Assembly: GCA_020891255.1 (NCBI GenBank)
Contig: BQFW01000008.1
Location: 2,232,001 to 2,296,000, forward strand
Reading direction: 5' to 3'
Length of the DNA stretch: 64,000 bases
From: Entomortierella parvispora E1425
Lineage: Eukaryota > Fungi > Mortierellomycota
Shown: positions 29,748-52,700 of the stretch, in pieces
Numbering within the stretch: position 1 is the first letter of the stretch
How the letters are laid out: every line of letters begins with the position of its first letter
Made by a program: the position numbers and the translations under genes
The notes under the pieces: model-generated
The model's input: only the letters and a program-made list of their open reading frames with translations
What the model was told of the DNA's origin: nothing
Database searches by the model: none

Positions 29748-32700
29748 ATGATCACCGCCGGAGCCAGCCAGGACAGAGTCCCGACATCGCAGGACTTCCT
29801 TTCGCAAACACAAGATGCCAGTGTCGATACTCTATTCCAGAAGGTCATATTTTACCTCAACCCTTTCCTCGGTGCGGAAAAAGTCGCAAAGGTATGACCC
29901 TAGTTGGAGCAATGGACATGGACCGTCTCCTTTAACCCTGGCGCATTGGACCTTGGTTGACAAGAAACGCCACCAATTTTTTTTATTTTCCCACCAGCTC
30001 GAGTCAAGTCTCTGTAGACACGGAGCTGTCATGACTACATCCTCTGTTGACACGCGAGGCGCCTCAATCACCACTCATATTATCACGGATGACCTTGACT
30101 TTCCCGACTACAAACACGCAAAAGCTAGGGGTATCGACATTGTCAAGGTGAGTTGTAAATTCCTTGTTGTCATGCGTAGCGCCTCAAGTGGAATGTGAAC
30201 TTTTTCTTAACATTAAGGTCTTTGGTCTTTTATTTCCAGCCTGAATGGGTTTATCGCTCAATAGCCTTAAACTCCTTACAAGAGTAAGAACATGTACATT
30301 GACTCCAACACCTCTTGTAATGACCGTCGCCTAACAATTCTCAACATTGTGTTCATAGTCCGTCCCGTTTCTCTGCCGACCCTTATTATATTTTCTCCGG
30401 GGTTGTACTTACAACAACAGGAGTAAGGAAACTTCGAAATCATTGGTCTTTTATCTTTCTGTGTTCGCCTACTAACTGTGACATTATTTGCTTAGCTGCC
30501 GGCTTATGACCGAAAATTGGTCCGCGAGGCCGTCGAGAAATTTGGTGGTAGCTATGTAAATGGAGTAACAGAGGATCTTACACACTTGATCGCCTTAGCA
30601 GCAACAGGGGTAAGTTCTTTGGATTCTCATATATGAGGTCAGCTGTATTCGTCAGCCTGAAATAACCATGTCATCATGTAATATTTCTGATCACTCTAGG
30701 ATAAATACGATTATGTTATGGATAACCCAGAGCTGAAAATCAAGGTCGTCCTTCCTACCTGGTTCCAACTCTGCTGCAATATGGGGTGTCTTTTTCCAGA
30801 GGTATATTCAAATGGATGTGTGCACATGAGAGTTGCTTTCGGCGAACCATACAACTAACACCTCTCCTCATCTTAATAGAACGTATACGAATTTCCTGAC
30901 CCGCCCATGCAAAACCCTTCGTTCGACCCATCTCAACTGGAAGTTGCGAGCTTGGGCGCCCCTCAACTCTATTCCAACAGTGTCAAGTCCGTGGCTGCAT
31001 TTCTGAACTCTCCTAGCCAAGGGCATGGCATGTTTTTGGATGGACTTCGCATTGTTCTGGGGGAAGATCTTACCATGCTGCCAGACCTTAGAACAAAATT
31101 CGTGGAGAAAATTGAATACGCTGGCGGAATTGTACTGAACAACGCAGGGGACTTTTCCAAGGAGGACGTCGATGTTGTCATCTGCCGGTTCAGATCAGGA
31201 CCCCTGTATACCAAGGTATAATTCTATTTATCAGTCATCGTGACGGCGTTACTCAATTTATCTGCCAGTTTATGATAGAGCTCTTAGTAACGTTCCCTTC
31301 ATTCCCTTCTTCCGCTCTGGAATAATAGGCGAGTAAGGATGGAAAAATTGTGGCCACTGCGGACTGGCTGTTGCATGTTTTGCAAACTGGCGCCATATCA
31401 TCTCCAAAAGCTTCTCTACTTCATTACCCGATTCCCAATGAACCAATCGCGGGCATGTCATCACTTATCATCACCGTCTCAAACTACACCGGCTCTATTC
31501 GCGAATATCTAAAGCGTTTGGTTCAAGCTACAGGAGCAACATACAAGCCAAACCTGACAAGTCAGGCTTCTCCAGATCCTACCACTCACATCATATGTGG
31601 AAAGTAAGTGCAGGGTCATTAGTAAAGCCAACATTACATACCTTGATCTAACCTTGCGCTCATTCTATTTTATTAGCGCTTCTGGAGACAAATACGAAAA
31701 AGGTCAAGAGTGGAACGTTAAAATCGTCAACCACCTCTGGATTGAAGACTGCTTTCAACGCTGGTCCATGCAAAGTGAGACCCAACACCGCTATACAATG
31801 TTTCCACCTTTCAACCAACTATCTTTGGTCTTTGGATCAAAAATCTCACCAGAATCTGCTGAGGACTGGTATCTTTCTGCAGAGGACGATGAGGATATTA
31901 CACTGGTGAAACACGAGGAAGTCGAAGGCGTTGTCAAGGATATTATCAAGCAGGACGATCCTTCTTTGAAGCGCTCCCAGAGCCCGATTCCAAAAGTCGA
32001 GGCATCTTCAAAACTAACAGATGTCCAGCCGACCTCGAAATCTGGCCCCCCCATTGACCGTTCATCACCACCGCCGACTCTTACTGTCTCAAAACACACA
32101 GTTTTACAGACAAGAGCTAAGACTTCACCTGTGCCCAATACCAGGACTCCCTTATCTCCACCGACGCTGCCTTCTGGAACCATTGCCTCTCCTTCATCTA
32201 CGCCTATCGGCCCACTAGCAGCTTCAACATCAGACACGTTCGCCTCACCTCCGCCCACCGCAATGTCTTCGCCAATGAAGAGCAAACCCAAAAGAGCAAA
32301 GGAAACTTCTCCAGAGTCAATACCAACCCCAGGAGAGAGCCCTGCCCCGCGTAGTAGAATGCGGGGTGCTGCCATGGCAGCGGCCACTGCGCTCAAAAAT
32401 CTTGTGCCAGACATGAATAACTTTCAAGAGGAGCTTCAGAACGAAAAGAAGGCGTCCAAGAAAAAGAAGAAGACTGCAATTGTGGACGATGCTGTGGAAG
32501 AGGATGCTTCAGACATGGAAGTTGATGCTGAGTCAAGCAAAACTACCGCTGCTTCATCATCCCCTCCCAAGAGAAAACGAGTGAGCGTTGCTGGTGAGGG
32601 CCGGAGTTCGCCCATTGAAAGCGACGACGATGATAACTCGACCGCCAATAGCAGTCGAGATGAAATTACACTAATCTCCAAGGGACCGGCCAAGAAGGTC

Positions 32701-33671
32701 AGACGCACGACAAAGGCCGAAAAAGAGAAGGAAGTCGCAGCTCCTGTGGAGGCGATGGAAACAGCCTCAAGTACTCAATCAGGCAAGAAGGACGCGAAGC
32801 AGGCGATACGCTACATCACTACTGGCCTTCCAAAGGAGCCTGCAGCAAAGCAACTTAAAGTCCTAAAGTCTCTTGGCATCTCTCCCACAACCTCCATCGA
32901 CCGCTCTACACACCTTGTCGCCAAAGGCATTTCTCGCACAGAAAAGTTTTTGGTGGCCGTAGCACAGGGCAAGGTGATTGTTCACGAGGATTGGCTTCAA
33001 GCTTGTATAGATGCCAATTCTGTCCTAGGTGAGTGTCAGACTTCGAGTCTTCTCTTTGCTTTTTCTTTTTTTTTTTTTTTTTGTGGTGAACCATTACATA
33101 TCACATATTGATGAAATGCTTTTTTACCTTTTCTGGGATAGACGAGAACGAATATCGAATCCAGGACGTAGAAAATGAGGAAAAGTTTGGTATGGACCTG
33201 TCCCAGTCGTTAAAGATCGCACGGGAGAAGCGAGTCTTTGAGGACCATGTATTTTACATCTCACCTTCGGTTGTGCCCAAGCCTGCGGCCCTGAAGACTC
33301 TTGTCGAGGCAGGAGGTGGTCGGACTTCGGCTCTGCTCCATACAGGTTTGAACTTTCTGAAGGAGACCATCCAAAAGCAGAAAGAAAGGGAAGCCCAGTC
33401 TGAATCTGAATCACGAGGATCCAAAGGACGAGGCCAAAGCAAAGCAAAGGGAGCCAAAAAGAGTGACGGCGCCGACCACGACGAGGACAACGGCGAGGGC
33501 GAGGACGAGGATGAAGACAAGGAGACGATTGCAGTAATCTCATGCGAGGATGACCGCGAGATGTGGGGGCCGATTCTGGAGGCCAAGGCCCACGTATACT
33601 CTCACGAGTTGATCATCCAGAGCATCCTGCGGCAAAGCGTAGATTTGGGAGCCACCCACGCCCTCGCGTAG
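29748..33671 (+). CDS. Multi-BRCT DNA damage scaffold, Brc1/Rtt107/PTIP-like (multi-exon)
   Basis: Several N-terminal BRCT exons (THLI, PTWF, THIICG, NHLWIEDC), a Ser/Pro-rich linker, and a C-terminal tandem BRCT (THLVAKGISRTEKFL...HEDWL; VFEDHVFYISP..VEAGGG). Confidence 0.85.
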
Positions 33672-33680
33672 TATGTACAG
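33554..33680 (+). repeat. 127-bp direct repeat, copy A (last codons and stop of the BRCT gene)
   Basis: CCGCGAGATGTGGGG...GCGTAGTATGTACAG, identical to 34570-34696. Confidence 0.95.
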
Positions 33681-34026
33681 TGGTAGAGTGGTAATCAACG
33701 AGAAAATGCGAACGTCACGTCACGTGATTTCTATGTGAAACACTGCGAATGGAGCAATTCCGCACTGAGAAGGGTAGTTCTGGGAGTGGGAACGGAGAGA
33801 ACGGGCTCATTTTTGGAACAACCCCAAAAGCACCTCTGAAAATGCAAATGCGAGCGAAGCTCGATTAAAAAAAAATCCCCTTCTCATGAGGTTGGCCTAC
33901 CTGGATCTTTCTATTTCTCTATCTCTTGGCCCGACTCGACTTACCCTCATCTTCTACAACGCTCTCTGGTGATCTTCACAGTGACGATTGAGAAGAACAT
34001 CATCATCATGGAAACTGTTTTATTAG

Positions 34027-34057
<31 letters not shown>

Positions 34058-34058
<1 letters not shown>

Positions 34059-34819
34059 CAGAGTTCGTCAATTGTCGTTGTTGACTGAGCCTGAGCTCCC
34101 ACTGTGTTGCCCTTACGCTTTGTCTGACGATCTCGAAGTGATTTTTGGAAAACAGCTATCTTTAGGCTTGAATCATCCAACTCCTTCTGGAGGATCGAGA
34201 TGGCCTGGTCGTGGGTCTGGTTCTCGTGCTCCATAATGAACTCGATCTCCCGGATGATGGTCTCTCGGTTGTTGATGTAACGGTATTCACTTCTGTATGC
34301 CTCCTGAGTGGGATATCCAAGTCTTTTGTCCAATTTCTGCACAGGATAAAGGCGATCGAATTCAGAAACAACGGCGCGAATAGTGTCTGCCTTCCTACTG
34401 AATTGAAATGGACCTATGACTGTTGCTGGCCTGCAAGCCAACCCTTGAGTGCCGATTGTTGTTGCCATTGCTGCTGTTGTAGCTGTTGTTGTTGTTGCTG
34501 TTGTTGTTGATGATGATGATGACGCCGATGCTGATAACGATGATGTGGTTGGTTCCATATCGACGTCCTCCGCGAGATGTGGGGGCCGATTCTGGAGGCC
34601 AAGGCCCACGTATACTCTCACGAGTTGATCATCCAGAGCATCCTGCGGCAAAGCGTAGATTTGGGAGCCACCCACGCCCTCGCGTAGTATGTACAGCTAA
34701 ACTCCCCGAAATGCATAAAGACGTGAGAATAAATTAGTTGAAAATATAAAGGTTTGTACTTTTGTCCTCGGATTTTTTGTTGCACTTACCGATGATGCTG
34801 TAAAGAAGATTGTGCTCAT
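34058..34819 (-). other. Chimeric ORF ending in a GCR1_C-like DNA-binding domain (Crypton-type 3' fragment)
   Basis: FQFSRKADTIRAVVSEF...YINNRETIIREIEF...QAISILQKEL...LR resembles GCR1_C. The upstream part is the antisense 127-bp BRCT-gene copy. A putative intron at 34789-34697 links it to an ATG at 34819 (222 aa). Confidence 0.6.
34570..34696 (+). repeat. 127-bp direct repeat, copy B (captured host-gene fragment abutting the Fanzor 3' region)
   Basis: Identical to 33554-33680, offset 1016 bp; flanks on both sides differ from copy A. Confidence 0.95.
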
Positions 34820-34850
34820 TCCACATGAGCCTCACTCGCGCGAGTGAACT
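34677..34850 (-). ncRNA. Candidate Fanzor omegaRNA (scaffold from ORF end to 34697, plus flank-derived guide)
   Basis: Position 3' of the Fanzor ORF; palindrome TCACTCGCGCGAGTGA (34847-34832) over the stop codon; GCTCAT-5nt-ATGAGC hairpin (34830-34814); sharp sequence boundary at 34697. RNA limits are inferred. Confidence 0.4.
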
Positions 34851-37800
34851 TTGGCGAGCGCTTTGTCGAAAGGCGCTGGCCATGTCTGTGTTTGTAGTTG
34901 AGTACCCAGACATCTGGAGAGATTTTCGCCAGCGTTATGGTCTCTGTCGATGTCCCAAATGCAGTTTTCACAGAGGATGGATCTGCCTTGCTGAACTGCC
35001 CGGAAGCGACATCGGCTGCAGAACTGACTGGACCGAAACTCCGGGAGCTTCACCGCTGGGATGCCATTGGCATTCGCCTATAATGTATAAGAGAACCAGA
35101 TGTTAGATATAACACCCCTTACTCTCTTTGAAAACCGACTCCAGCAACACTTACTGTCCGCGCTAGTTCGTCCAAGGTTTTTTCCTTTCGGCCGCCAAAG
35201 TCCCCGTCACCTATTCCAAGAACGGCTGGCGTCTCTCGATACTCCTGAACTTCAGTCGGTGGAATATTCGGGTGGGGAATATGCGCCATCTTGATAGCCG
35301 CTGCACAGACCAAGCTTTTGTCGCTTCGAATCGCCGTCCTCATATCATAAAGATCCTTCTTGAAACTGATTGATCCGTAAAAGATCCTTAGCTTCTCAAA
35401 TGCAGCGAGGCGAGGTCTGAGCCAGTCTAAGTGGTTGCTATAGAGTGCGCTGGCAGCTGCCCTCCAATCGCAAACCGTTGTCCCGTTTTCCTGTGTGACC
35501 TTCACTTGTACGGGAGCAACATCTGCAATCAATGTGTTCTCCAGTTTGTCGATCCCATGGGTCTTTTTCTTTGCGTTTAGACATCCAATGTATCGCTTTT
35601 GAATGTCTTTAGCCACGGTGTCGGTGATATCGAGGGTCTGTGAAAAGTCAGGGTACTTGGTGTGTACTGCGACCACGCTTGCAGGTTTCGCCCGGCCTGG
35701 ATCTACCCCGATCCCGATAAAATGCGGGCCACCCAAAGACTGAACACGCTGCGCTGTTGAAAAGAGGTCCTGGACATATGGTAGGGTTTTCGCATGTACT
35801 GCTGCAGCCTTTACGCCTGCGAGGTTTGGCTGTACCACCTGTCCCTGCCCTGAATTTCCATGTCCAACACTAGAACTCTCATTAGGATTTTCAGTCTCAC
35901 TTCCAGGCAGGCTCTCCTCCAGCACAGGATCAGGAGACGTCCAAAGCTCTGAGTCGTATATATCCAAGGATGAAGGTAAAGCGGAAGATGCAGCAAAAGG
36001 TAGAGCGGAAGGCAGAGCAAGAAAACCTTCCTCTGGAGCTACGGCAGGGATATTGTGCTGATAACCACTGCCAGTAGGACTGGGGTTGCTCTTCGTATTC
36101 TTCTTTGGGCGTAATGTGGTCAAATCAAAAGCCAACACATGGAGGTTATGACCGTCCGTCTTGATGACACCCGTCGGAACATAGTGTCTTCGAGGTGTGT
36201 TCTCGGCGCTACTGCTCGACCCCGCATGCAGACCATGTAGAGTCACGTCTCGCAGTTGTCGTTGTTGTGTAGCTGACATGTTGCTTAAAATGTCCTTCAG
36301 CCGTTGTAGTTCAACCTCCATCGACTTAAGGGCGTTCGAGATTGATCCACTAGTCGTATGGATGTTCGCGATGGTGGGGGGAGGGTTACCAGGAAGCTGT
36401 GACCATTGCCCCTGAAACACCGAGATACGATGGAGTATGTCTTGAGAATCTGCCAGCCCTGGGTCCTGTTTTTTAGCCAAACTGGAGCATTCCTTCAGGA
36501 GAGCGCAGAGTGTTTTGTCGATTGATGTGTATTCATCCAGGTGCTCCAGCTCTGTTTGAATTCTCAGGCGCGAATCAGGGATGAACAAAGCGCGATCACT
36601 GTTCATGGCCGGGTTCATGAGAGCAGTGCCACGTCTGTACGAGGTATTTTTCGACATGAAAAAGTTGAAAAATAGCTCCCCTCTGTGGGCGATTGCTCGC
36701 TGTTCGGCGGCCACGACCGTTCCAGTGAAGATTGCACCTAGTGCACTCTTTGTAGCTGGTGTAGGTTTGAGGTGTCGGCATGCATCAACGAACTCCCTTT
36801 CGGTTAGGTCCAGGTCCCGGTCTTTGAAGGCGATCACAGGGAATAGCGCAACTTGACTGTCGGGTCGCAGTAACGCGTTCAGGAGCAAGTGAACGGATAC
36901 GGGATCGTGCAGCTTTGACCGACCAGTGCCTTCAATCGAATCCAGGAAAAGTCGTCCTTGCTCGGACTTTGAGAATTGTATCTGCTGGACAAGAACCTAG
37001 CGAACAGGACAGAGACAAGAGTGAGCGACGAGCAAAGAGACAAAGACCATAAAACATCGCACTATGAATGTCAAGCACTTACTCGCTGCTTAAGTTCGCC
37101 GACGTTTCTCAGAACAAGGCTGCAGATTAAGTCGTGCGCGCTGCGTGCGCAAGATTCCAAGAACTTGGCGCTGACCGCCTTCTCTGGTCTCTTTGTAAAG
37201 GGGTCGAATAAGATCCCGCCGGCCTGCTGGTTGCTATGCTTCTTTTTGAACTCCAGTACCACCGTAAACGCAAGCCGCTGTGTGCCTTCGCACTTGAGCT
37301 GAGTGAGGGTAGCATCTGTAAGATCGTTCCATCTCCAAAGGGCTCGTACCACATGATATACGAAGATTTGACTTGTGTAGACTGGACCAAGTGCATCTTT
37401 TCTTTTCTTGACGTCGTCCTCGTCAAGAGTGGGGTGAGACTTGAAAATAGACAACGCATAGTCTTGCAATACCGCGATCGCCGACCAAATTGCGTCAGAG
37501 TTTGCTTTGACCAGGTCCATTATTATTGTCCGCATGGATCGGTACGTATCCTGTACTTCCAATAGTGTCGATCCCTTCATCTGGCTTTCAAGTCCTTTGT
37601 AAAGTGTGGAGCACAGAGTACCCGGCTGGAGTGACACCTGGGAAAACGTTGTTTCCAGAGTGGCTTTAATGTGCGTGGTATCGTGCTCCCTCCTTGCCGC
37701 AGTGACTGAGCCAGCCGAAGACGTCAAGTCACCCATCTGTTTGTTTACAGCATGTCGCGCCTTTCTGCTTGAACGGTTGTAAATGGGCTTGGAGGTAGCG

Positions 37801-39739
37801 GCCTTTTTTTCGTTCGTCTTTTTCTTCTTCTTTTGGCTTGTCTCCTGCGAAAGGGAACGTTTCTGACTGGTTGCGGCAGTAGGAATCGAAGACGAACCTG
37901 CTGGGTTGTCATCTTCCAAGTTCTGGTTGACTAGATCCGTCGTAAGTGGTGAGGATCCAGTTTGGTTGTCAGAGTTGCTGGTGTGGGTAGCGTTCGGAGT
38001 GACGGGGTGGACTTTTGGAGGGCCTATGGACTGATCGTATAGCCCCACGGGTCCCTCATTCCTAGACCAGCCAGGGGGAAGACTCTCCGACCAAGCTGTG
38101 CGATCATGATGCCGAATCTTTGAAAGATAGTCTGGCCGCGTTCTATCCCTCATGAATCGCAGAAAGCTATTCATAAAGTGCAGTAGTGTTTAGAAAGGGA
38201 TCTTCGGCATGGTATGCTTTCTCTCTGTATAGCAATATGATACCATACCCTTGCTTAATCTCTGTCTGACTTGAGCTTCCTCCTTCAGGGACCACAGGCA
38301 ATGATGAGGCGCTTGACCTGATGAAGGACGGATTGATGACATTCGTTCAGAAAAGAAAAGAAAAGAAAAGAAAAAAAAAGAGTGACAATTTGAGATATCT
38401 TACCTTGCGGTTGGTTTGGTCCTCTTGTTCCTGTTTGAGAAATCGCATAGGGGAGAAAACAAGTCAGTACTGCTGTCCTTGAGTGCCTTTCAATAGGACA
38501 AACGCTTGACACTTACCTATATCGAAGCTTGGAGACTTCATTCACGATATGCAGCATCAAGTGGTCGACGAGCTTTGCCGCATTATCCTCCAATATGATG
38601 CCGGTGTCTGTATCCTCCCTATTGTCGACGAAGATATCCACGCTGTTCTCAAAGACAGCCTGATCGATCGAATTCTGAGAGCAGAACTTCTTGACGTAGT
38701 CGACTGCCTTTGGCATGTCTGGCATTTCGTCCATGTCGCGGATGGTATCCACAATCTTGGTAAGGCTTAGGCCGGGGACCTTTCGATCGTAGTCATTCTC
38801 CGCCAGAACTGCCACAGCTTGCCATTGTTCATAAGACAGCTCAAGACTCCCGAGGATCGCCCCGATATCATATTTGTAATACCGGCCACCTTGAGGACTC
38901 TTGCGCAACACGTATGAAGCTCCGTGGAAAACATTGTCGCTATCAGCCGACGCGACCACCGTGTCTTCCTGCTCTTCCTCAGCATGCCTACTGATGCAAA
39001 CATCGGCCTCCCCTGGGCAGGCGTGTACCTTCCATCCCTTTGAGCCGAGTTGATTGCCAAGTGTGTCCCAGTCCCTATGAGTGATTGCCTTTGTATTTAT
39101 CCACGCCTTGAGCAGTGGGCCGCGAATCCTCTTCACTAACCGAAGTAATTGGTTCTTTGTTGGCTTGGCCTTTCCGGCTGCAGTTTTCAGGGACACTTGC
39201 GATTGCAGATGGGCAAGATGGGACAAAACGGATGATGCCTTGTGGACAAACGCTGCAATCGCTCCGATTCGAGAACGATCTCTTTTCTGGCGGGCGTATG
39301 TCTTTTGGATGGATCTGGCGCCGTCAAAGTGGAGTATTCCTTGGTCTTTGGAAAACTTTTTCAACAGTGTTTTGTCGATCGCCGCCGAGATGTCGATCTC
39401 AAATATTTCCGAGGGGACTGGTGGGAGCGTAGACTCGGAGCCGATCAGTGATAAAAACTCCGTGTTGCTCTTGATGGCATCAGTCTCAAGAGGAGGGACT
39501 TTGGTCAAAAAAAGAGAGATCTCAGCGGGAAGCATGTAGGGTGCCTCGAGGTTGGCCGAGGAGTTCATGTGATTTTTCATTTCCGCAAAGATCTTGTTGC
39601 AGCGGATGCTTCTCGCAAGCGCAAACAAGATAGCAGGAATGTCGATGTGGACTCTCGGGAAAACATCTTTGGGCACAACTTCGGGATACTCCAGGCCTTC
39701 GATGTTGGCCAAGTACGGCCAGGTACTGGCCACGCCCAT
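34832..39739 (-). CDS. XPG/FEN1-like 5' nuclease fused to Fanzor (eukaryotic TnpB) RuvC nuclease; 6 exons, 1496 aa
   Basis: Exons 39739-38517, 38430-38404, 38317-38249, 38166-37083, 36996-35155, 35077-34832 join in frame at GT..AG sites. XPG motifs: MGVASTW, VHID, HFDG, GEADV, SADSD, ENDY..VPG. Fanzor motifs: KTDG, IGVDPG (RuvC-I D), PEFRSSQFCSRC (RuvC-II E + CxxC), CENC..DRDHNAGEN (CxxC + RuvC-III D). Confidence 0.88.
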
Positions 39740-41120
39740 CTATGACACCAAAGACGATTAAACAGCCTCAGTTAGATGGATATGTACTACGCTGACTACA
39801 GTTCACTCTCCTGATGGAGCTAAGAGTCCAACTCAAAGAGGACAACGGCAGTTTGCGCTCTTTCCCCGTGCATATGCCAAAAGCCTTGTCTCGAAAAGAT
39901 ACACTGTTTTTGTACATAGAGCGTGATCCTTACAGTCAGTGACGGCAAGCTCTGAGTGTCCAAGGGCGGTGATAGATGATGATGAGTGCAGAAAAGTAGT
40001 AGTTTGTAATATTCAGTGAATAGAGCAGGGATGGTGAGAAAGGAAAGGAGCAAGAAAGGACGAGTGGATGATCGATAGCTGGCCATCAGATTTCCAAAAA
40101 AAACCTAGGATAATTTTTATTATTGATGCCCCTCGCAGTTGCACCCTACAAACACAATAACACTAATATATTGTGCTTTGCACCTAAAAAAAAATAATCT
40201 TGCAGATATCATGATGATAAAATGAAACACATTGAGCAGTCACCGCGATCAATCTTGAAAACTGCCCGCCAAGACCTGCACCTCTTCGTTTTTCCTTTCT
40301 TTCTGTCTTTCCCAACTCACCCACCATTTCCCCCCCCCCCCCCCCCCCCCTTCCATCCCCCCCAACTACCGAATACCACACACCTAGACACACACCTACG
40401 GCCACACAAGAAGCTCGAGGAGGTCGACGAGAGGAGAGGACGATGACGAGGTAAATGTTCTGCTCTCTTTGGAAGTTTTGTACCAAGGAACCTTGCTAGA
40501 GGTTGTTCGAGCATCCATACTGACTTTCCTTCGTCTGGTGAACGATCGTTCCTTGCCTCGTTATATAACCTTCAGGTTCGTGTAAAGCTTTTAAGGACAA
40601 AAGGACAAAGGCAGTGCCTCCCTGTGGAACAGACGCGGCCTTCAGACCTTGTCTTTTGCGTTGGTGCTGTAGAGATGGTCACACAACGCTCACTTCTCAT
40701 ACTGTCGTCATCTAGACTCCATCAGAGACCTGCGTGATGCGGTCTCTCCTTGCGAACACGAGTCTATTTGCAGTTTGCTTGTTCGTTTGAGAGTTTGATC
40801 AACACTGATCCTTGGATGGGCACATGATGATCCAAAGCTAACTTCCACCTCCACCCGCTTCACTCTAGACTTGCGAACATCTTTTGCGTATATGTTTTGC
40901 GAACAGGCACCATTCTTTGGTCGCACCCCCAAACGAACACCAGCACCATAGGTCTGGATCAAAACCTTCCACATGTATCGCGAGTCGATCCCATGTCAGG
41001 AATTGAGTTCTCTCTCAACTTATGTAAGTATTCTCAGGTCAAATCTGCTTTCTGTCTCGTCAATTACAACTGAGCGCCATATTAATAAATTTTCTCTGGG
41101 TCATTTCTACCTGATAGTCA

Positions 41121-44100
41121 CATTTCCATAAAATTCACGGTTCATTTTTGTTGAATGGATTTTTATGGACGGCCTATGAGGGCGTGTGTAACATAGTCAG
41201 GGCCATTGCCAATGGACCGTCAAAACCAATGAAATTTTGTTTTCGCCCCTTTTTATCCATTATGAGATGATGAGCCACAGTCCCCCCTGACGGTCTGGCA
41301 TCGTCTTTGATCAACGACTGCCTGTCGAATCTCCGTACGTACTTCTCTCCTCCCTCCCTCCCTCCCCTCCCCTCTCCCTCCTCCCTCTCCTCCCTCTCTT
41401 CCCTTTCCTCTCACTCACTGTTTCTCTGTCGTATTTTTCATGTCTGCGTGTGTGAGAGCGTGTGTGCGCACGCGCATGTGTATTTTATTAAAAAAAAAAA
41501 AAAAAGGAAAAAAAAAAAAACTATGGTTGCTCTTTTGCTTTCACCTTTCCTTTTCCTTGCTCTTTTTCTTCTGAGCTTCCAAACCTCTTGGAAACCTTTT
41601 TGGGCAAAAGCTTGTAGTATGCTGCAATTGAGCAAGAGTTGCAATCTTCCTTCAGCATGTCCTGAAAGTCTTGAAGAGCTTGTGCAATCATAGCCATGTC
41701 AATTGGTGTGTTATCCGGGATGTAGCGCAAGACCGATTGAACAATCGTCTTCTTGAATAAGTAGAGACCTGCAAACCCGTTTTTCCCATCAGGGTTAGCC
41801 GAATTCTTTTCACTGCGCCATAGATTTGAATACCATGAATCCATCGTCACGACTGAGGGGCTACCATTGACACCATAGAACCACTCTTGCCAAACCCCCT
41901 CTAGCGTGTTTGGCCGAGGGACCAACGTGCACAAAGGCATGTGCCTGGGCATAGGAGGGTCAACCTCGCCTCTCTCTCTTCTGTAGTGCGCAATTACTAC
42001 AGCCACAGCTTGGATTTTATCTTGAGTTTTGACAGAATGGCCGCTGTCATCATGACAACGTGGATGGATAATGGAAGGAGGAGGAGCGACTAAGCTCGAT
42101 TCTTCTACCCTCGATAATTGCAGGCTGAGAATCGGGGCACCTGGGGCTTCCTGCTCTTTTGACAGCAGACCCAAACGAGGTAGAACGGACCCTTCAGTGA
42201 TACTCAAGCCTCCTTGTTCTTGTTCTTGGGTTATAGAGGTCATCCGACCAGCAGCATCTGACAGAGAGGCCGCTAATGACTTCACTAGGGCATCAATCTT
42301 GTCATTCACCTTGCCCATACCTTGAACGACACCCTCAAGGACATACTGATTACGCTGCTCTGCATGCAAGGCTCGGCGGTCCTGGTAGACTTGGAGCCTC
42401 TCAATGTTATCCGAGATCTTGGAGATCGCAGTGCTCATTGTTTGTTGTCGGGAAGTTTGCTGTGATATGAGGGCATTGGCGGCCTCCAGTTGCCGCTGAA
42501 TAACAGGTGCCACGGACGTTAGGTTGCTAGGGCGAAGGGAAGTGTGGGCTAACGTTTCTGCCATCAACTTCTTAAATGCCAAAAATTCCGGAGACCTGAA
42601 TACTTCACGCTTGAAAATAGGGTGCCGGGAAGATTTGTTCTCGGCCAATAAAAAAGACGGCGGCGTCCTGCAGAATGACTTTCCGCAAGTGGGCAAGCAG
42701 ACAAAGATGCCGTCGACGCGAGATTGCCTCATCAGAGAGAACTTTCCGTGCAGCCCTTTTCTTGATTTTTTTGATCTTAATATTTTCCTCTTGACGTCCG
42801 TAGAATATGCTCCGATCCAGCATGATGTTGTCGATGGTCTGGATCCAGAAAGGGTCGTAGTGCTTTTTGTCCTCAGGATTTGAGCATGCACGTTCAATGA
42901 ATGGGAAGACCATGCGCTGTAGCTCGAGGTCTGGAATGACATTACGCTCCAGCCAAAAGTTTTCCGTACGGCCATTCTCAAATCCGGCCATTTGCAACGC
43001 CACAGATGCATCGACGCCGTCGAGGTAATGGGTGATGAGTCGGTTTGTCCCCCAGCCGCCGTGTTTCGATATATCTTCGTGCGTGGCTCCAGTCAGCCGC
43101 GCCAAAAAAGCACCCAGTCGTCTACTGAGATGGGTTGCTTTGCCTTTGACACCAATGTTGAGATAATCCTGGACCTCGCGTGTCTGCTTGTACTGTGTGG
43201 CATATCGTATCTCTGATGTTCGTGTGGTGGACTTTGACAACAAGTGATAGTTGACCCAGTCGTGATCTTCTACTCTAGGCGGAGGGGCAGCCGATGAGGA
43301 AGTAGGCTAGATAATTCAGATTAGAAAGGGGTAGAGCCTCACCCAGCTCATAAAATGTACGTCATAATCAAAAAGTTCAAACTTACCAACCAGTACTCAA
43401 GCAGATAAAAGGCTAGAGCACCGACAGGACACGCTTCCACGTCTGGGTTTCGTACCACGACATTATATCGGATCTTGCCATTATTGTTCATTTTTCCTTG
43501 TCTTGTCATCAAAACCACACCAAGGACGAATTTTCTCTCCTGCTCCCGATCTTTCCGCACTGGACGTGCAACATTCTGGCCAAAGAGGTCGATCAATCTC
43601 ATCCTGCGTGTGGTTTCACTGCGGCACATCATAAAAAATCGAAGGGCGGCGTCAGCTCGATGGCGAAGACCAGTTATCACTCGTGTCCATTTGCTCTGTT
43701 CGCCCTGTATATTATGGTGCCAAAAGTGCACCATTACCATCTTGACATTCTCCAAAGGGTCCTCCTCGACAAAGTTTGCTGAGCCTTGATCGGTATCTGT
43801 CGCTCTCTTCGTGACCGCCACTCTTCTTTCGTAACTCGTAATCAGGTCCCTCAGGTAATCCATCGGCTTTCTCTCGAGACACCTGAACATGACTTTGTTG
43901 TCTGGGTCCACACGTTGCTGACGGTAGAGTTCTCCGATGGCGGATGCGTGTAATTTTACCGTTGAGAGAGACGGTGCATTGGCCGGTAATCCCCTGTCGG
44001 AATGACATACATTCTCACCGAGGTCGTCATTGACACTATCGCTGTCACTATCGTTGTCATCATCAGTGTCGTCGCTATCATGACCATCGCTGTCACTGTC

Positions 44101-45268
44101 ACTGTTGTCGTCGCCTCTTTCTCTCTCGTCTTCAATTGCTTTTTCTTTTCCCGCGCATTCCAGTAGGTAAAATGATGATACCTGTTAACATGGAAGTTGA
44201 CATAGAGGTCATTCTGATGAGAATACGTAGACAATGGAGATACAAAATGTGATTATCGGTTCTTACCCTTGCTTGGGTCCTCTTTCGATGCAGTTAAACA
44301 AGTCCAGTAACGCAAGACTTTCTCTTCGATGACGTTGGCGTCTGAGTATCCAGCTTCCGTGCACCATTTCTAGTCATTAATGAGTTTATGGGTGTTTGTA
44401 GTAGACGAATTAGAAAAAAAAAAAAAAAAAAAAAGGATAAAGGGCACTGTCAGCCATGATCAGCCACGATCGTACACTTGGCCCAACTTACAGAGAATAC
44501 GGCTTGATATCGGTCATAGAGTGCACGCGTCGACGTCTTGATACTTTCCCTTCGCTGTTCGCGGACAAGTTGCATACAGGCCAACTCCTTTTGTCTCAAG
44601 TCAAGCTCATGAGCTTGACGCGCCTTCTTGTCCGCATGGAACTGCGCGACAATAGAAGTACTAGACGAGATTCCTTGCGTGTTGTCGTGTTGTCGTGACG
44701 CCGCGAGCTCGGACGCGTCGAGTGAATCCTGCAGGTACAACGAAGCCCAGAGAGATGGAGCATGAGTATATAGGCAAACAGAATGGCATAGAGGCACACA
44801 GATGGCACTGTTCATTCCGCAGCATGCGTAGAGCTGACGTAGTCGAGTCGAGCATTACATTAGATTCACGTTGAGATGAATCGACTTGCTGGGAGCATGG
44901 TTGCTGGCCAGTTGTCGGAGGCTCTCGTTTCTGTCGTTTTCGCGTCCGCTGTTGTTGCTGTTGTTGCTGCTTGGGTTCCTGGGGCGGTTCCTGGTCCTGT
45001 TGAGACAATTGATGCTTGGGCATTTGGAGAAGGTGCGCCAATGAAAGAATGTAAAAAGAATGATGTAGCAAATGTGCCGCATGCATGAACGGGCCCAGGC
45101 GCCTGACAACCCCCTTTATTCCCGTGGACAAAAAGAAAATATCTGTTTTTTGGCCCTTGTTCAATTTCATGGGCTGGTTCATCGGGCCAATAATGGACTG
45201 CAGGCGCGACGACGATTGGCCGACTTGGTCACGTGACTTTATGGACCGTCAATGTCCAGGAAGCGTCT
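41121..45268 (-). mobile_element. Crypton (CryptonF-type) tyrosine-recombinase transposon, copy 1 (~4.15 kb)
   Basis: Encodes YR/NDC10_II-like motifs and a GCR1_C domain. Boundaries defined by the tandem repeat; CA dinucleotide at all three junctions; imperfect subterminal inverted repeat. Confidence 0.88.
41521..45023 (-). CDS. Crypton tyrosine recombinase + GCR1_C, copy 1 (spliced; at least one +1 homopolymer frameshift; start tentative)
   Basis: MCRSE (R), QGKMN (K), RNPDVEACPVGALAFYL, THLSR (HxxR), GGW, HYL (Y), AGF, LRKVILQDAA / HPIF, and C-terminal NTLEGVWQEWFYGVNGSPSV..LWR. Frame break at the A6 run 42650-42655. Confidence 0.8.
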
Positions 45269-48200
45269 CATTTCCATAAAATTCACGGTTCATTTTTTGT
45301 TGAATGGATTTTTTATGGACGGCCTATGAGGGCGTGTGTAACATAGTCAGGGCCATTGCCAATGGACCGTCAAAACCAATGAAATTTTGTTTTCGCCCCT
45401 TTTTATCCATTATGAGATGATGAGCCACAGTCCCCCCTGACGGTCTGGCATCGTCTTTGATCAACGACTGCCTGTCGAATCTCCGTACGTACTTCTCTCC
45501 TCCCTCCCTCCCTCCCCTCCCCTCTCCCTCCTCCCTCTCCTCCCTCTCTTCCCTTTCCTCTCACTCACTGTTTCTCTGTCGTATTTTTCATGTCTGCGTG
45601 TGTGAGAGCGTGTGTGCGCACGCGCATGTGTATTTTATTAAAAAAAAAAAAAAAAGGAAAAAAAAAAAACTATGGTTGCTCTTTTGCTTTCACCTTTCCT
45701 TTTCCTTGCTCTTTTTCTTCTGAGCTTCCAAACCTCTTGGAAACCTTTTTGGGCAAAAGCTTGTAGTATGCTGCAATTGAGCAAGAGTTGCAATCTTCCT
45801 TCAGCATGTCCTGAAAGTCTTGAAGAGCTTGTGCAATCATAGCCATGTCAATTGGTGTGTTATCCGGGATGTAGCGCAAGACCGATTGAACAATCGTCTT
45901 CTTGAATAAGTAGAGACCTGCAAACCCGTTTTTCCCATCAGGGTTAGCCGAATTCTTTTCACTGCGCCATAGATTTGAATACCATGAATCCATCGTCACG
46001 ACTGAGGGGCTACCATTGACACCATAGAACCACTCTTGCCAAACCCCCTCTAGCGTGTTTGGCCGAGGGACCAACGTGCACAAAGGCATGTGCCTGGGCA
46101 TAGGAGGGTCAACCTCGCCTCTCTCTCTTCTGTAGTGCGCAATTACTACAGCCACAGCTTGGATTTTATCTTGAGTTTTGACAGAATGGCCGCTGTCATC
46201 ATGACAACGTGGATGGATAATGGAAGGAGGAGGAGCGACTAAGCTCGATTCTTCTACCCTCGATAATTGCAGGCTGAGAATCGGGGCACCTGGGGCTTCC
46301 TGCTCTTTTGACAGCAGACCCAAACGAGGTAGAACGGACCCTTCAGTGATACTCAAGCCTCCTTGTTCTTGTTCTTGGGTTATAGAGGTCATCCGACCAG
46401 CAGCATCTGACAGAGAGGCCGCTAATGACTTCACTAGGGCATCAATCTTGTCATTCACCTTGCCCATACCTTGAACGACACCCTCAAGGACATACTGATT
46501 ACGCTGCTCTGCATGCAAGGCTCGGCGGTCCTGGTAGACTTGGAGCCTCTCAATGTTATCCGAGATCTTGGAGATCGCAGTGCTCATTGTTTGTTGTCGG
46601 GAAGTTTGCTGTGATATGAGGGCATTGGCGGCCTCCAGTTGCCGCTGAATAACAGGTGCCACGGACGTTAGGTTGCTAGGGCGAAGGGAAGTGTGGGCTA
46701 ACGTTTCTGCCATCAACTTCTTAAATGCCAAAAATTCCGGAGACCTGAATACTTCACGCTTGAAAATAGGGTGCCGGGAAGATTTGTTCTCGGCCAATAA
46801 AAAAGACGGCGGCGTCCTGCAGAATGACTTTCCGCAAGTGGGCAAGCAGACAAAGATGCCGTCGACGCGAGATTGCCTCATCAGAGAGAACTTTCCGTGC
46901 AGCCCTTTTCTTGATTTTTTTGATCTTAATATTTTCCTCTTGACGTCCGTAGAATATGCTCCGATCCAGCATGATGTTGTCGATGGTCTGGATCCAGAAA
47001 GGGTCGTAGTGCTTTTTGTCCTCAGGATTTGAGCATGCACGTTCAATGAATGGGAAGACCATGCGCTGTAGCTCGAGGTCTGGAATGACATTACGCTCCA
47101 GCCAAAAGTTTTCCGTACGGCCATTCTCAAATCCGGCCATTTGCAACGCCACAGATGCATCGACGCCGTCGAGGTAATGGGTGATGAGTCGGTTTGTCCC
47201 CCAGCCGCCGTGTTTCGATATATCTTCGTGCGTGGCTCCAGTCAGCCGCGCCAAAAAAGCACCCAGTCGTCTACTGAGATGGGTTGCTTTGCCTTTGACA
47301 CCAATGTTGAGATAATCCTGGACCTCGCGTGTCTGCTTGTACTGTGTGGCATATCGTATCTCTGATGTTCGTGTGGTGGACTTTGACAACAAGTGATAGT
47401 TGACCCAGTCGTGATCTTCTACTCTAGGCGGAGGGGCAGCCGATGAGGAAGTAGGCTAGATAATTCAGATTAGAAAGGGGTAGAGCCTCACCCAGCTCAT
47501 AAAATGTACGTCATAATCAAAAAGTTCAAACTTACCAACCAGTACTCAAGCAGATAAAAGGCTAGAGCACCGACAGGACACGCTTCCACGTCTGGGTTTC
47601 GTACCACGACATTATATCGGATCTTGCCATTATTGTTCATTTTTCCTTGTCTTGTCATCAAAACCACACCAAGGACGAATTTTCTCTCCTGCTCCCGATC
47701 TTTCCGCACTGGACGTGCAACATTCTGGCCAAAGAGGTCGATCAATCTCATCCTGCGTGTGGTTTCACTGCGGCACATCATAAAAAATCGAAGGGCGGCG
47801 TCAGCTCGATGGCGAAGACCAGTTATCACTCGTGTCCATTTGCTCTGTTCGCCCTGTATATTATGGTGCCAAAAGTGCACCATTACCATCTTGACATTCT
47901 CCAAAGGGTCCTCCTCGACAAAGTTTGCTGAGCCTTGATCGGTATCTGTCGCTCTCTTCGTGACCGCCACTCTTCTTTCGTAACTCGTAATCAGGTCCCT
48001 CAGGTAATCCATCGGCTTTCTCTCGAGACACCTGAACATGACTTTGTTGTCTGGGTCCACACGTTGCTGACGGTAGAGTTCTCCGATGGCGGATGCGTGT
48101 AATTTTACCGTTGAGAGAGACGGTGCATTGGCCGGTAATCCCCTGTCGGAATGACATACATTCTCACCGAGGTCGTCATTGACACTATCGCTGTCACTAT

Positions 48201-49419
48201 CGTTGTCATCATCAGTGTCGTCGCTATCATGACCATCGCTGTCACTGTCACTGTTGTCGTCGCCTCTTTCTCTCTCGTCTTCAATTGCTTTTTCTTTTCC
48301 CGCGCATTCCAGTAGGTAAAATGATGATACCTGTTAACATGGAAGTTGACATAGAGGTCATTCTGATGAGAATACGTAGACAATGGAGATACAAAATGTG
48401 ATTATCGGTTCTTACCCTTGCTTGGGTCCTCTTTCGATGCAGTTAAACAAGTCCAGTAACGCAAGACTTTCTCTTCGATGACGTTGGCGTCTGAGTATCC
48501 AGCTTCCGTGCACCATTTCTAGTCATTAATGAGTTTATGGGTGTTTGTAGTAGACGAATTAGAAAAAAAAAAAAAAAAAAAAAGGATAAAGGGCACTGTC
48601 AGCCATGATCAGCCACGATCGTACACTTGGCCCAACTTACAGAGAATACGGCTTGATATCGGTCATAGAGTGCACGCGTCGACGTCTTGATACTTTCCCT
48701 TCGCTGTTCGCGGACAAGTTGCATACAGGCCAACTCCTTTTGTCTCAAGTCAAGCTCATGAGCTTGACGCGCCTTCTTGTCCGCATGGAACTGCGCGACA
48801 ATAGAAGTACTAGACGAGATTCCTTGCGTGTTGTCGTGTTGTCGTGACGCCGCGAGCTCGGACGCGTCGAGTGAATCCTGCAGGTACAACGAAGCCCAGA
48901 GAGATGGAGCATGAGTATATAGGCAAACAGAATGGCATAGAGGCACACAGATGGCACTGTTCATTCCGCAGCATGCGTAGAGCTGACGTAGTCGAGTCGA
49001 GCATTACATTAGATTCACGTTGAGATGAATCGACTTGCTGGGAGCATGGTTGCTGGCCAGTTGTCGGAGGCTCTCGTTTCTGTCGTTTTCGCGTCCGCTG
49101 TTGTTGCTGTTGTTGCTGCTTGGGTTCCTGGGGCGGTTCCTGGTCCTGTTGAGACAATTGATGCTTGGGCATTTGGAGAAGGTGCGCCAATGAAAGAATG
49201 TAAAAGAATGATGTAGCAAATGTGCCGCATGCATGAACGGGCCCAGGCGCCTGACAACCCCCCTTTATTCCCGTGGACAAAAAGAAAATATCTGTTTTTT
49301 GGCCCTTGTTCAATTTCATGGGCTGGTTCATCGGGCCAATAATGGACTGCAGGCGCGACGACGATTGGCCGACTTGGTCACGTGACTTTATGGACCGTCA
49401 ATGTCCAGGAAGCGTCTCA
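45269..49419 (-). mobile_element. Crypton transposon, copy 2 (head-to-tail with copy 1)
   Basis: ORF track repeats at a 4149-bp offset; the differences noticed between copies are homopolymer lengths. Confidence 0.88.
45670..49172 (-). CDS. Crypton tyrosine recombinase + GCR1_C, copy 2 (same frameshift; start tentative)
   Basis: Same translation as copy 1; frame break at the A6 run 46799-46804. Confidence 0.8.
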
Positions 49420-49722
49420 ATAACCTACATAAGAACTCCATAAAATAAAAATTGATCACGGGACCGCGGACCGCCGCTGGCTTCTCGGAGACTCACCCAC
49501 TGAGTGGGTGAACACCGCCACCATTTTGTCTGTCGGCCGCAATTTGACTCCCTTTGGGGCTCACTCGTTCGTCTTCTTCCCCCCACTCTTTGAAGTGTGC
49601 TCCAATTCATTTCTCTCTTGTTCGTTCCTACCTTCATTCATTCCTCTTGTCCTCTCTCCCTCCTGTTCCTTCCCATACCTCGTCCTGTTCCCCATCCCTT
49701 TATACCATTCCTCCCTCTCCTA

Positions 49723-52700
49723 ATGACTGACTCCATTGGTAATCCCCTCTTTCATACCCTATCTTTCTGGCCCCTCTTGGCACTTGTAGTCGTCGTCTAT
49801 TGACACACCTATCCTCGTGGCTGATCCTCTCTAGATGTCCAGGCATACCTGGAAAAGACGCTGAACGAGCGCATCATGTATATCGATGGTGCCATGGGTA
49901 CCATGATCCAGCGTCTGCGCCTTGAAGAAAGCGACTTCCGAGGTAATTATACCCCTCTCTGCGTCAGTCGTCCCTACACTTCATTTGGGAAGTGACTCCA
50001 TCAAAGAATGACTCGTGGGAACTAGAGCCGTGCTCTTGAACAACGGAAAGAAGCGTGGACGATTTGGATGACCTGAGCGACCTGGACCCACCTCTCACGA
50101 AAGAGCAGATAAAGAATGGCGTTTTTTTCGTTTGATCTGAATCGATCAAATGTGACTCGACACTCAGTCCACGCTTCAAAACCCTTTTTTTTTTTTATTG
50201 AGCAAACGCCATTATGGTTTCCCCAGAGTTGTTCAATCGCCCGCCTGAAAGAATTATCGTGCCTGTCGGACTCCGACAGAGTGCAGGGAAGGAAGGAAAG
50301 AAACGACCGAGCTGAGTAGGAAGTTCACATGACAGGACTGGACACTGCTGGACAGGAACAAACCTCCAGCCAGCCAGAAAGACAGACGGGCAAGATCTGT
50401 TATCAGCAGCCAACCAGCCAATTCAAGCACGCTATTTTTCCCTGTCCCCACACACAACGCTAACGCCGCTCTCACCCCTTCCTATGGCCTCCCCACCTGT
50501 TACCCCAACCATATCCGTCCTCCTCATGCTCCATCAGGCGAGGAATTCAAGAATCACCCCAAAGATCTCAAGGGCAACAACGATATGCTGGTTTTTACTC
50601 AGCCAGACGCCATTGAGCTCATCCACTGGCAGTACCTTGACGCTGGAGCAGATATGGTCGAGACCAACACTTTCTCGTCCACCTCCATCGCCCAGTTGGA
50701 TTATGGTCTCGAGAAGTCGGCCTATCGCATGAACAAGGTCGCAGCCGAGGTTGCAAAGAGAGCCACAGCCAAGGTACCCTATTCACCAGTGCACAGCCAG
50801 CCGACTCAGGGGATGAAGAGGGGGGGAATGTACCACCAACCGGACGTCAACAAAAAAAAAACTTTTCTTTTTTCCAGCCTCTCTTTATTGACCCGTCATG
50901 ACCTCTTTCGTAGATGACGGCTCTCACACCTGATCGACCCCGTTTCGTTTGCGGTGCACTTGGACCAACAAATAGAACCTGCTCCATCTCGCCCTCCGTG
51001 GAGAACCCTGCCTTCAGAAACGTTACATTTGATGAGCTCGTGGAAGCCTATGCAGAGCAGACGAAGGGTCTTTTGGACGGAGGAGCGGATATCCTCTTGG
51101 TTGAAACAATTTTTGATACCCTGAATGCCAAAGCCGCCCTGTTTGCTATCGACCTTTGCTTCTCTGAAGGATGTCGCCGGACACCTGTCTTTGTCTCGGG
51201 AACAATTGTCGACATGTCAGGACGTACACTGAGTGGACAGACAGGAGAGGCTTTTGTGGTCTCGATGAAGCATGGTACACCCATGGCCATTGGCCTTAAC
51301 TGTGCGTTGGGAGCTGATCAAATGAGACCCTTCATCTACAACATTGGCCAGGCCGCAAAGTCGCACGTTATTTGCTACCCCAACGCTGTAAGTACCTCCG
51401 ACATTGGGGAGTGTCATTGCGTAATATTCGAGCTGGTATCTAGAGCTAACGTGGATCGTGTTTATATTGTTAGGGTCTTCCTAATGCTTTCGGTGAATAC
51501 GACGAGTCTCCAGAAGATATGGCCAAGCAGGTTGAGGTGTTTGCAAAGGAAGGATTGGTTTCGATCATTGGAGGATGCTGTGGTACAACTCCAGATCATA
51601 TCCGCGCCATTGCCAACGCTTGCAAGAAATACCCCCCTCACCGTTTCGAAAAGGAACCAGTGATCAGCTCCATGCTGCTGTCGGGTCTGGAACCCCTCAA
51701 AGTAGACCAGTCAAGTAACTTTATCAACATTGGAGAACGTTGCAACGTTGCAGGATCCCGCAAATTTGCACGCCATGTACTCAAGGGAGAGTACGACGAG
51801 TGTTTGGCCATTGCTCGTGCCCAGGTCGAGAACGGAGCCCAAGTGGTGGATGTCAACTTTGATGAGGGTATGTTGGACGGTGTGGCGGCCATGACCCGAT
51901 TCTTAAACTTGCTCAGCAGTGATCCCGATGTGAGCAAAGTGCCTCTGATGGTGGACTCTTCCAACTTTGCCGTCATTGAAGCTGGATTGAAGTGCGCCCA
52001 GGGCAAATGTATTGTTAACAGTATCTCGCTCAAGGCAGGAGAGGAGGAGTTTGTTCGCCAGGCTACGATCGTTCGCCGTTTTGGTGCCGCCGTAGTTGTG
52101 ATGGCCTTTGACGAACTTGGACAAGCCGACACGAAAGAGCGCAAGTTTGAGATTTGCTCGAGGTCCTACCATATTCTTGTCGACCAGGTCGGGTTCAACC
52201 CCAATGATATCATCTTTGACCCCAACATCTTGACCATCTGTACAGGAATGGAGGAGCACAACAACTACGGAGTCGAGTTTATTGAGGCTATTCGACTGAT
52301 CAAATCCAACTTGCCAGGAGCAAAGATTTCGGGAGGTGTCTCCAACTTGTCCTTCTCATTCCGCGGTATGGAAGTCATCCGTGAGGCGATGCACAGTGTG
52401 TTCTTGTACCATGCTATCAAGGCTGGCATGGACATGGGTATCGTCAACGCTGGTTTCTTGACTGTCTATGACGACATTCCCAAGGACCTGTTGCAGCTGT
52501 GCGAGGATGCGGTTTGGAACAGAGATCCCGAAGTCACGGACAAGCTTCTCGCCTATGCCCATGCTAATGCCAAGGGCGCCAAGAAGGAGGCTGAGACGGA
52601 GGAGTGGCGTTTGAAACCTGTGGCGGAACGCCTGTCGTATGCCTTGATCAAGGGAATTGTCAAGTACATTGTCGAGGACACAGAGGAGGCTCGCCAGGAT

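Follow-up and report, generated by a model that had tools for sequence, protein, structure and literature searches.

The 64,000-nt stretch analysed here (the window; positions 2,232,001 to 2,296,000 of the forward strand of contig BQFW01000008.1, assembly GCA_020891255.1, with its own numbering used throughout) comes from the fungus Entomortierella parvispora E1425 and contains a transposon-rich gap separating two housekeeping genes. An earlier note, made from the letters alone, had reported that 127 bp from the 3' end of a host gene with BRCT domains recur beside a Fanzor-bearing element. A repeat search and direct reading confirmed that 33554-33680 and 34570-34696 are 100% identical over 127 nt, with a start-to-start distance of 1016 bp. 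The two copies are referred to as A1 and A2, the 889 bp between them as B and the Fanzor element adjoining A2 as F, with a right end (RE) on the Fanzor 3' side and the opposite end designated LE. The assembly is chromosome-scale (38.9 Mb, 20 contigs), and in a search of all of it A1 and A2 are the sole two copies and B is single-copy except for a CAA/TTG microsatellite. Because so few contigs make up the assembly and B is otherwise single-copy, a collapse or mis-join behind the repeat, which the earlier note had allowed for, appears unlikely.

A1 is the genuine 3' end of a plus-strand multi-BRCT gene that is intact, and a Pfam search of its two large exons returned BRCT_2, RTT107_BRCT_5, BRCT and PTCB-BRCT domains. 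Orthologs of this gene were found in Mortierellaceae, and a distant ortholog on an outgroup contig (L059) shares the C-terminus ...THALA*. The TA at which F is inserted sits 5 bp downstream of the stop codon, and the identity between A1 and A2 extends beyond the host flank through this TA and through CAG, the first 3 nt of F. A1 and A2 show 0/127 differences whereas the window copy of F carries 53 private substitutions (about 1%), which mildly suggests that the duplication may be younger than this copy of F. A target-site duplication (TSD) of F was ruled out as the origin of the repeat, both copies being on the same side of the element. The longest open reading frame (ORF) called across A2 and B, with 205 aa and a GTG start (34058-34675, minus strand), joins the antisense of the duplicated BRCT tail to GCR1_C sequence from B. 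Its frame is open by accident, and gene callers could annotate it as a protein.

The neighbour of A2 is a Fanzor-bearing mobile element, as the earlier note had it, and the ends of F were mapped from its other copies. F is about 5.5 kb long and has seven other full-length copies, which are 94-98% identical to the window copy and diverge from one another by 0.8-4.6%, together with partial copies and solo ends. In the plus orientation of the window, the 8-10 aligned copies start with CAGCTAAACTTCCC directly after a flanking TA, and the intact ones finish with ...GAGAAGTTCGTCTG directly before a TA and the flank. Copy-to-copy conservation ends exactly after CTG-TA, which places the RE end of F at 34694, the duplicated target TA at 34692-34693 and the variable flank from 34691. 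The stretch 34570-34691 is thus a genuine 3' flank, while the end had previously been put at 34697 and the repeat had been described as starting immediately after F; its last five nucleotides, TACAG (34692-34696), turned out to be the TA duplication and the first 3 nt of the element itself. TA flanks F at 10/10 RE junctions and at 5-6 of the 8 LE junctions, with mutated sequence at the rest, and the termini form imperfect inverted repeats of 27 nt that start with CAG (CAGCTAAACTTCCCGAAATG versus CAGACGAACTTCTCGAAATG, about 22/27 nt matching). Because of these TA flanks and inverted repeats, F was classified as Tc1/mariner-like. TA-flanked Mariner-type elements are known to carry Fanzor1 genes (PMC3627910).

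On its minus strand F carries, besides the Fanzor exons, an XPG_I-like exon and one of 367 aa; these exons were queried one by one in protein searches. The last Fanzor exon matches Pfam PF07282 (Cas12f1-like_TNB) with an E value of 5.6e-8 and a score of 33.3 bits, above the cut-off of 26.3, and the best PDB matches of the 73-aa exon, weak at E 0.1, are ISDra2 TnpB and Fanzor chains at the motif CxxC...CxxC...DRDHNAGEN. The 589-aa ORF gave no Pfam or PDB sequence match; GVDPG, which would correspond to the Fanzor-type DPG signature of RuvC-I, is legible in it. The XPG exon matches XPG_I with an E value of 5.6e-4, under the gathering score, and is conserved in all copies of F, and the Fanzor and XPG ORFs are intact in nearly all copies. 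No DDE transposase domain was detected by Pfam in the ORFs of F, and the inverted-repeat pattern occurred genome-wide only at known F ends, in a search that was not directed at a partner with diverged ends. Since F has no internal transposase and its terminal pattern occurs nowhere else, the family is probably mobilised in trans.

Several further observations concern the RE. A stretch of 227 nt there, where a structured omegaRNA would be expected, does not fold better than shuffled sequences (z -0.88), and an Rfam scan of 33400-35200 gave no match above threshold; a sub-threshold 5.8S rRNA match at 34757-34899 on the plus strand, opposite the Fanzor 3' region, scored 19.9 bits against a gathering score of 42 and is probably due to chance. 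Two solo pieces of about 95 nt (L015:1490-1591 and L016:1490-1587) share 78-82% identity with the final 100 nt of F and are bounded as TA-CAG...CTG-TA. They have GTAAGTGC close to their start and TTTAG at their end, two sequences that resemble splice sites. No Fanzor or transposase gene lies near them and one directly follows a PPR-like host gene; they may be miniature or introner-like forms derived from the RE.

The window copy of F is damaged on its other side. Homology to the other copies ends at 40172, where R1 (0.95 kb) and two head-to-tail Cryptons follow, and resumes at 49425 straight after this array, fading 18-30 nt short of the LE tip. The continuation at 49425 rules out a mere truncation at 40172. 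A terminal-motif search found neither the LE inverted repeat nor its TA in the window, and this copy of F is stranded, no longer excisable as a unit. R1 and the Cryptons form a single insertion, 55 nt away from the LE tip of F. R1 has at least 10 copies in the genome. An R1 end adjoins a Crypton start on a further contig as well (C14:1778721-1779729), so that R1 could be either a non-autonomous partner of Cryptons or a target that they prefer. In the last stretch of F homology (49446-49470), about four changes or indels fall within 17 nt, against about 1-3% in the rest of the copy, a pattern that would fit error-prone synthesis at a junction formed by repair. CCGCG, the first 5-mer of the 127-nt repeat, is also present at 49464-49468 as a possible microhomology. 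The features of the locus are collected in Table 1.

Table 1. Positions of the genes, repeat copies and mobile elements at the locus, in window coordinates.
Feature	Position	Strand	Remarks
Host multi-BRCT gene (RTT107/PTCB-BRCT type), exons and introns	30907..33671	+	Pfam; stop codon TAG at 33669-33671
A1: final 118 nt of BRCT coding sequence including the stop codon, then TATG, TA and CAG	33554..33680	+	
A1/B junction, TA-CAG-TGG-TA	33676..33685		Terminal CAG of F kept; TA-GA follows, the family consensus target
Perfect second match in A1 to the 20 nt flanking F at A2	33656..33675	-	Spans the BRCT stop codon
Spacer B, putative Crypton-type 3' remnant	33681..34569	-	ORF 34061-34558 is the GCR1_C tail, followed by a 377-nt 3' region
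A2: host flank of 122 nt (34570-34691), TA (34692-34693) and the first 3 nt of F (34694-34696)	34570..34696	+	
F, main part, from RE inward	34694..40172	-	TA-flanked, Tc1/mariner-like
Fanzor exons: 589-aa ORF with GVDPG; 73-aa ORF with CxxC...CxxC and DRDHNAGEN	34832..36888	-	
XPG/FEN1-like nuclease exon of F	38513..39739	-	
Insertion in F: R1 (to about 41120), then a head-to-tail pair of Cryptons (41121 to about 49423)	40173..49424	-	
Continuation of F, LE subterminal region	49425..49458	-	20/21 nt match at 49425-49445, weaker beyond
Unique DNA upstream of the methionine synthase gene, adjoining the damaged LE side of F	49460..49830	+	

We then considered the origin of B, which has no paralog in the genome. 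Its minus-strand ORF carries a GCR1_C domain according to Pfam. An exhaustive protein search retrieved 12 relatives, the best of which are 426-517 aa long, align to B only with their C-terminal third and carry NDC10_II, a Crypton recombinase-like domain, ahead of GCR1_C (69% identity over 112 aa in the case of P0010). A word-based search within the length class of the B protein found no relatives; they are about three times longer. The N-terminal two-thirds, which would include the recombinase part, do not lie beside B, and only distant Crypton families occur elsewhere in the genome. B therefore looks like a 5'-truncated 3' remnant of a Crypton-type element, a relic rather than an element, and if it is the tail of a Crypton-type gene, 34569/34570 would be a breakpoint inside that gene. 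Other origins were tried and rejected: no tRNA was found that would fit a tRNA or short interspersed element origin for the A-box-like start of B, B has no significant similarity to the resident Cryptons, and the absence of paralogs argues against a duplicated host gene. A retrocopy origin of A2-F or of B is not favoured either, as the junctions lack poly(A) and the length and intron regions of F match those of the other copies; an A-run within B sits mid-B, directly after a stop codon, and is no retrocopy tail.

Guides of TnpB and Fanzor nucleases are read from the flank of the element (PMC10432273, PMC13565253), and a guide derived from the RE flank of F would match 33675-33656, across the BRCT stop codon. 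The earlier note had drawn such a guide; its perfect second match in A1 stood, and the CUG and UA that it had included proved to be misplaced. By analogy with published Fanzor1 structures, the variable part of the guide would start CAUACUACGCG. The 3' TSD is part of the scaffold and the 5' TSD part of the target-adjacent motif (TAM), which in Fanzor1 systems has 4-5 nt and includes the 5' TA (PMC13565253). On the LE side of F, TC (mostly TTC) stands immediately before the TA in 6/8 independent insertions (L037, L039, L040, L041, L048 and L038, in element orientation; P about 4e-6; compare 33684-33690 in the window), and the RE flanks are variable. A symmetric preference would be expected of a TA-targeting transposase. 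Because the flank motif is asymmetric, unlike such a preference, TCTA/TTCTA is a candidate TAM of the XPG-Fanzor nuclease.

This motif bears on whether the BRCT gene would be cut, since (T)TC-TA is absent from A1 at the right distance from the match. CTACCA had been suggested as the candidate TAM there; the 5 nt upstream of the match in A1 are CTGTA, the same as at the junction of F itself. TCTA has the same NNTA shape as CATA, the TAM of SpuFz1, in which each single mutation abolished cleavage (PMC10432273), and TGTA differs from TCTA at position -3. As the context of A1 is that of the A2 junction, whatever blocks self-cleavage at A2 should therefore protect A1 too, and A1 would be no better a target than the locus of F. 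The stranded F could still make a flank-derived guide RNA; the match to the BRCT gene is real, and there is no sign, and on this analysis little expectation, of cutting.

Taken together, we favour as the probable explanation that the repeat is a DNA-repair scar at the RE of a TA-targeting inverted-repeat transposon that carries an XPG-Fanzor gene. It would be a real but ordinary rearrangement scar, with the duplicated flank a by-product and not an acquired guide whichever path led to it. Since A1 equals A2 through the CAG of F, A1 should once have been joined to an F end or copied from such a junction, and the shared CAG places the duplication after the insertion of F and the break 3 nt inside its end. 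Three nucleotides inward of the end is where DDE transposases cut, and where those of the mariner type cleave the non-transferred strand. In the proposed course of events, F would have inserted at the TA downstream of the BRCT stop codon, with A2 (34570-34691) as its original flank; later a double-strand break located at the RE junction, 3 nt inside F, would have left CAG on the flank and been repaired imperfectly. One product would be the flank with CAG joined to a truncated Crypton fragment (A1/B), and the other 127 nt of flank with CAG still on F (A2/F), either kept or resynthesised from a sister copy. The duplicated flank was found in none of the seven other full-length copies (0/7), for which 5 kb of flank on one side and about 0.6 kb on the other were examined; thus the A-B-A arrangement is a one-off and not a property of the family.

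The order of these steps may have followed any of three paths, which fit about equally. In path (i), F would first have stood at A/B, a duplicate or copy of the A-F unit would have arisen 0.9 kb away, and excision of the first F would have left the footprint TA-CAGTGG-TA. In element orientation the A1/B junction reads CCACTC-TA-CCACTG-TA-CATAC, which under path (i) could be read as a TC-TA site, as on 6/8 LE flanks, followed by 6 extra nt that end in the CTG of F. In path (ii), a Crypton would have inserted 3 nt inside the RE and then broken; the F-side end would have copied 127 nt from the Crypton-free sister chromatid and been end-joined to the Crypton tail. A single repair event would then be enough to produce A-B-A, to truncate B and to leave CAG in both copies, with the TA-GA at the start of B being a coincidence (about 3%). 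In path (iii), the LE being defective, the transposase would have cut the RE alone, so that the flank end kept CAG; the F end would have been extended from the sister, and Crypton DNA captured as filler. The sequence at 33676-33685 is accordingly a candidate for either an excision footprint or an end-joining junction.

Several points weigh against a repair scar. No outgroup or empty allele fixes the ancestral order of the BRCT gene, the Crypton relic and methionine synthase: a gapped pattern search of metagenome contigs returned no match to an empty allele, one outgroup contig stops inside the gene, and the other outgroup locus, at 39% identity, is followed by a different gene and is too remote to separate the three paths. 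CAGTGG is not a canonical footprint of the CAG/CTG type, path (i) needs several further events, and under path (ii) the loss of the LE tip needs an event of its own. No autonomous transposase with the inverted repeats of F was found genome-wide, and the 3-nt stagger is therefore assumed from Tc1/mariner enzymes in general.

Other explanations were weighed as well. The earlier note had read the duplication as the scar of Fanzor cutting and repair, or as a captured spacer-like host fragment, with the guide actively targeting the BRCT 3' end 1 kb off. We consider this very improbable, even though flank-derived guide logic has been published for Fanzor1 (PMC10432273), A1 is a perfect second flank match, the nuclease ORFs are intact, and resection followed by repair through copying could be promoted by an XPG/EXO1-like domain. 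SpuFz1 cuts 16-21 nt into its target (PMC10432273), whereas the boundaries of the repeat lie 0 and 127 nt from the junction, and neither an indel nor any other difference is present at the expected cut, 33655-33660. The CTGTA upstream of the match is the self junction, unlike the TC-TA of the LE flanks. Capture is further opposed by the lack of a duplicated flank in the DNA examined beside the seven other copies of F and by the nature of B, a truncated Crypton relic and not host sequence related to targeting; to our knowledge, OMEGA systems have no acquisition step, which also counts against a captured spacer. A related suggestion, improbable in our view, keeps the nuclease in the process without capture: once F had left or been cut at its RE junction, the fused 5' nuclease would resect, 127 nt of flank would be copied from the sister chromatid, (T)TC-TA would be the TAM, and the extra bases in A1 would make it a homing-resistant allele. 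If true, A-B-A would be the first scar found in nature that restorative homing has left, with a eukaryotic OMEGA nuclease acting on a DDE-type transposon.

Two further possibilities were considered. The host might have carried A-B-A or A-B-A-B before F arrived, F then inserting at the TA of the second copy with the shared CAG coincidental. Tandem duplications do arise spontaneously, F does target TA, and a later deletion near the LE is evident anyway; we nevertheless think a pre-existing duplication improbable, as the CAG would be a 1-in-64 coincidence, the LE-side flank would be CA, off the TA-GA consensus of 6/8 copies, and an extra deletion is needed to remove the second B. Alternatively, reads from an allele or nucleus that has F might have been falsely joined to reads from another that lacks it, an idea to which the multinucleate state of Mortierella-type fungi and the presence of both 'empty-like' and 'filled' junctions in one contig lend some appeal. 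Such an artefact is hardly credible in a chromosome-scale assembly of 20 contigs, as the B/A2 junction offers no overlap that an assembler could use and has unique sequence on both sides, and long reads easily span a 127-nt repeat 1 kb apart.

On the repair-scar explanation, the locus is useful beyond the repeat. It fixes the true ends of an XPG-Fanzor transposon family as TA + CAG...CTG + TA, the asymmetric flank motif gives a candidate TAM, and for the stranded copy of F an intact BRCT gene supplies a perfect match away from its own site, yet in a 'self' context. Experiments at this locus could distinguish the formation of footprints from repair off a sister copy and from Fanzor targeting.

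Cut-and-paste DDE transposons such as Tc1/mariner, P and Ac/Ds are known to give rise to footprints, to duplicated flanks and to adjacent deletions, and A-B-A would be a new instance of this known scar type. As in aberrant excision products of these elements, the terminal 3 nt of F are kept by the TA at A1, and a flank duplication and an adjacent deletion are tied to one element end; unlike their footprints, the extra 6 nt CAGTGG are non-canonical and the duplicate lies 0.9 kb off with a Crypton fragment between. It has already been published that Fanzor1 genes occur in TA-flanked inverted-repeat elements, that their guides are read from the flank and that the TAM is coordinated with target preference. 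A close counterpart is SPu-1 of Spizellomyces punctatus, a TA-flanked Fanzor1 carrier (Bao & Jurka 2013, PMC3627910), with its nuclease SpuFz1 (Saito et al. 2023, PMC10432273). F shares with it the TA flanks, the inverted repeats, several near-identical copies, the lack of an internal transposase, a Fanzor gene located at one end and oriented so that its 3' end lies by the terminus, and an NNTA-shaped motif (TCTA here, CATA for SpuFz1). It differs in that F is 5.5 kb long and also encodes an XPG/FEN1-like nuclease part, the guide and TAM are predicted from sequence, and the window copy is stranded, having lost the LE repeat, with a 127-nt flank duplicate nearby.

The 5'-truncated Fanzor1 CRe elements of Chlamydomonas, which have flanking duplications of 44-443 bp (Bao & Jurka 2013, PMC3627910), resemble the present locus in that damage to the 5' (LE) end of a Fanzor1 element goes along with a direct flank duplication of unusual length. 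The CRe duplication flanks both sides in the manner of a TSD, and the carrier is Helitron-like, whereas here both copies lie on the RE side, with a Crypton relic between them. Restorative homing of transposons by TnpB/OMEGA nucleases has been demonstrated for IS605/IS607 elements alone, which are scarless (Meers et al. 2023; review PMC13565253). The logic is similar, with the guide coming from the RE flank, the empty donor site as the target and the LE flank plus 5' TSD as the TAM; unlike in IS605/IS607 homing, the 6 extra nt of A1 shift TC-TA off the match, and A1 would be resistant.

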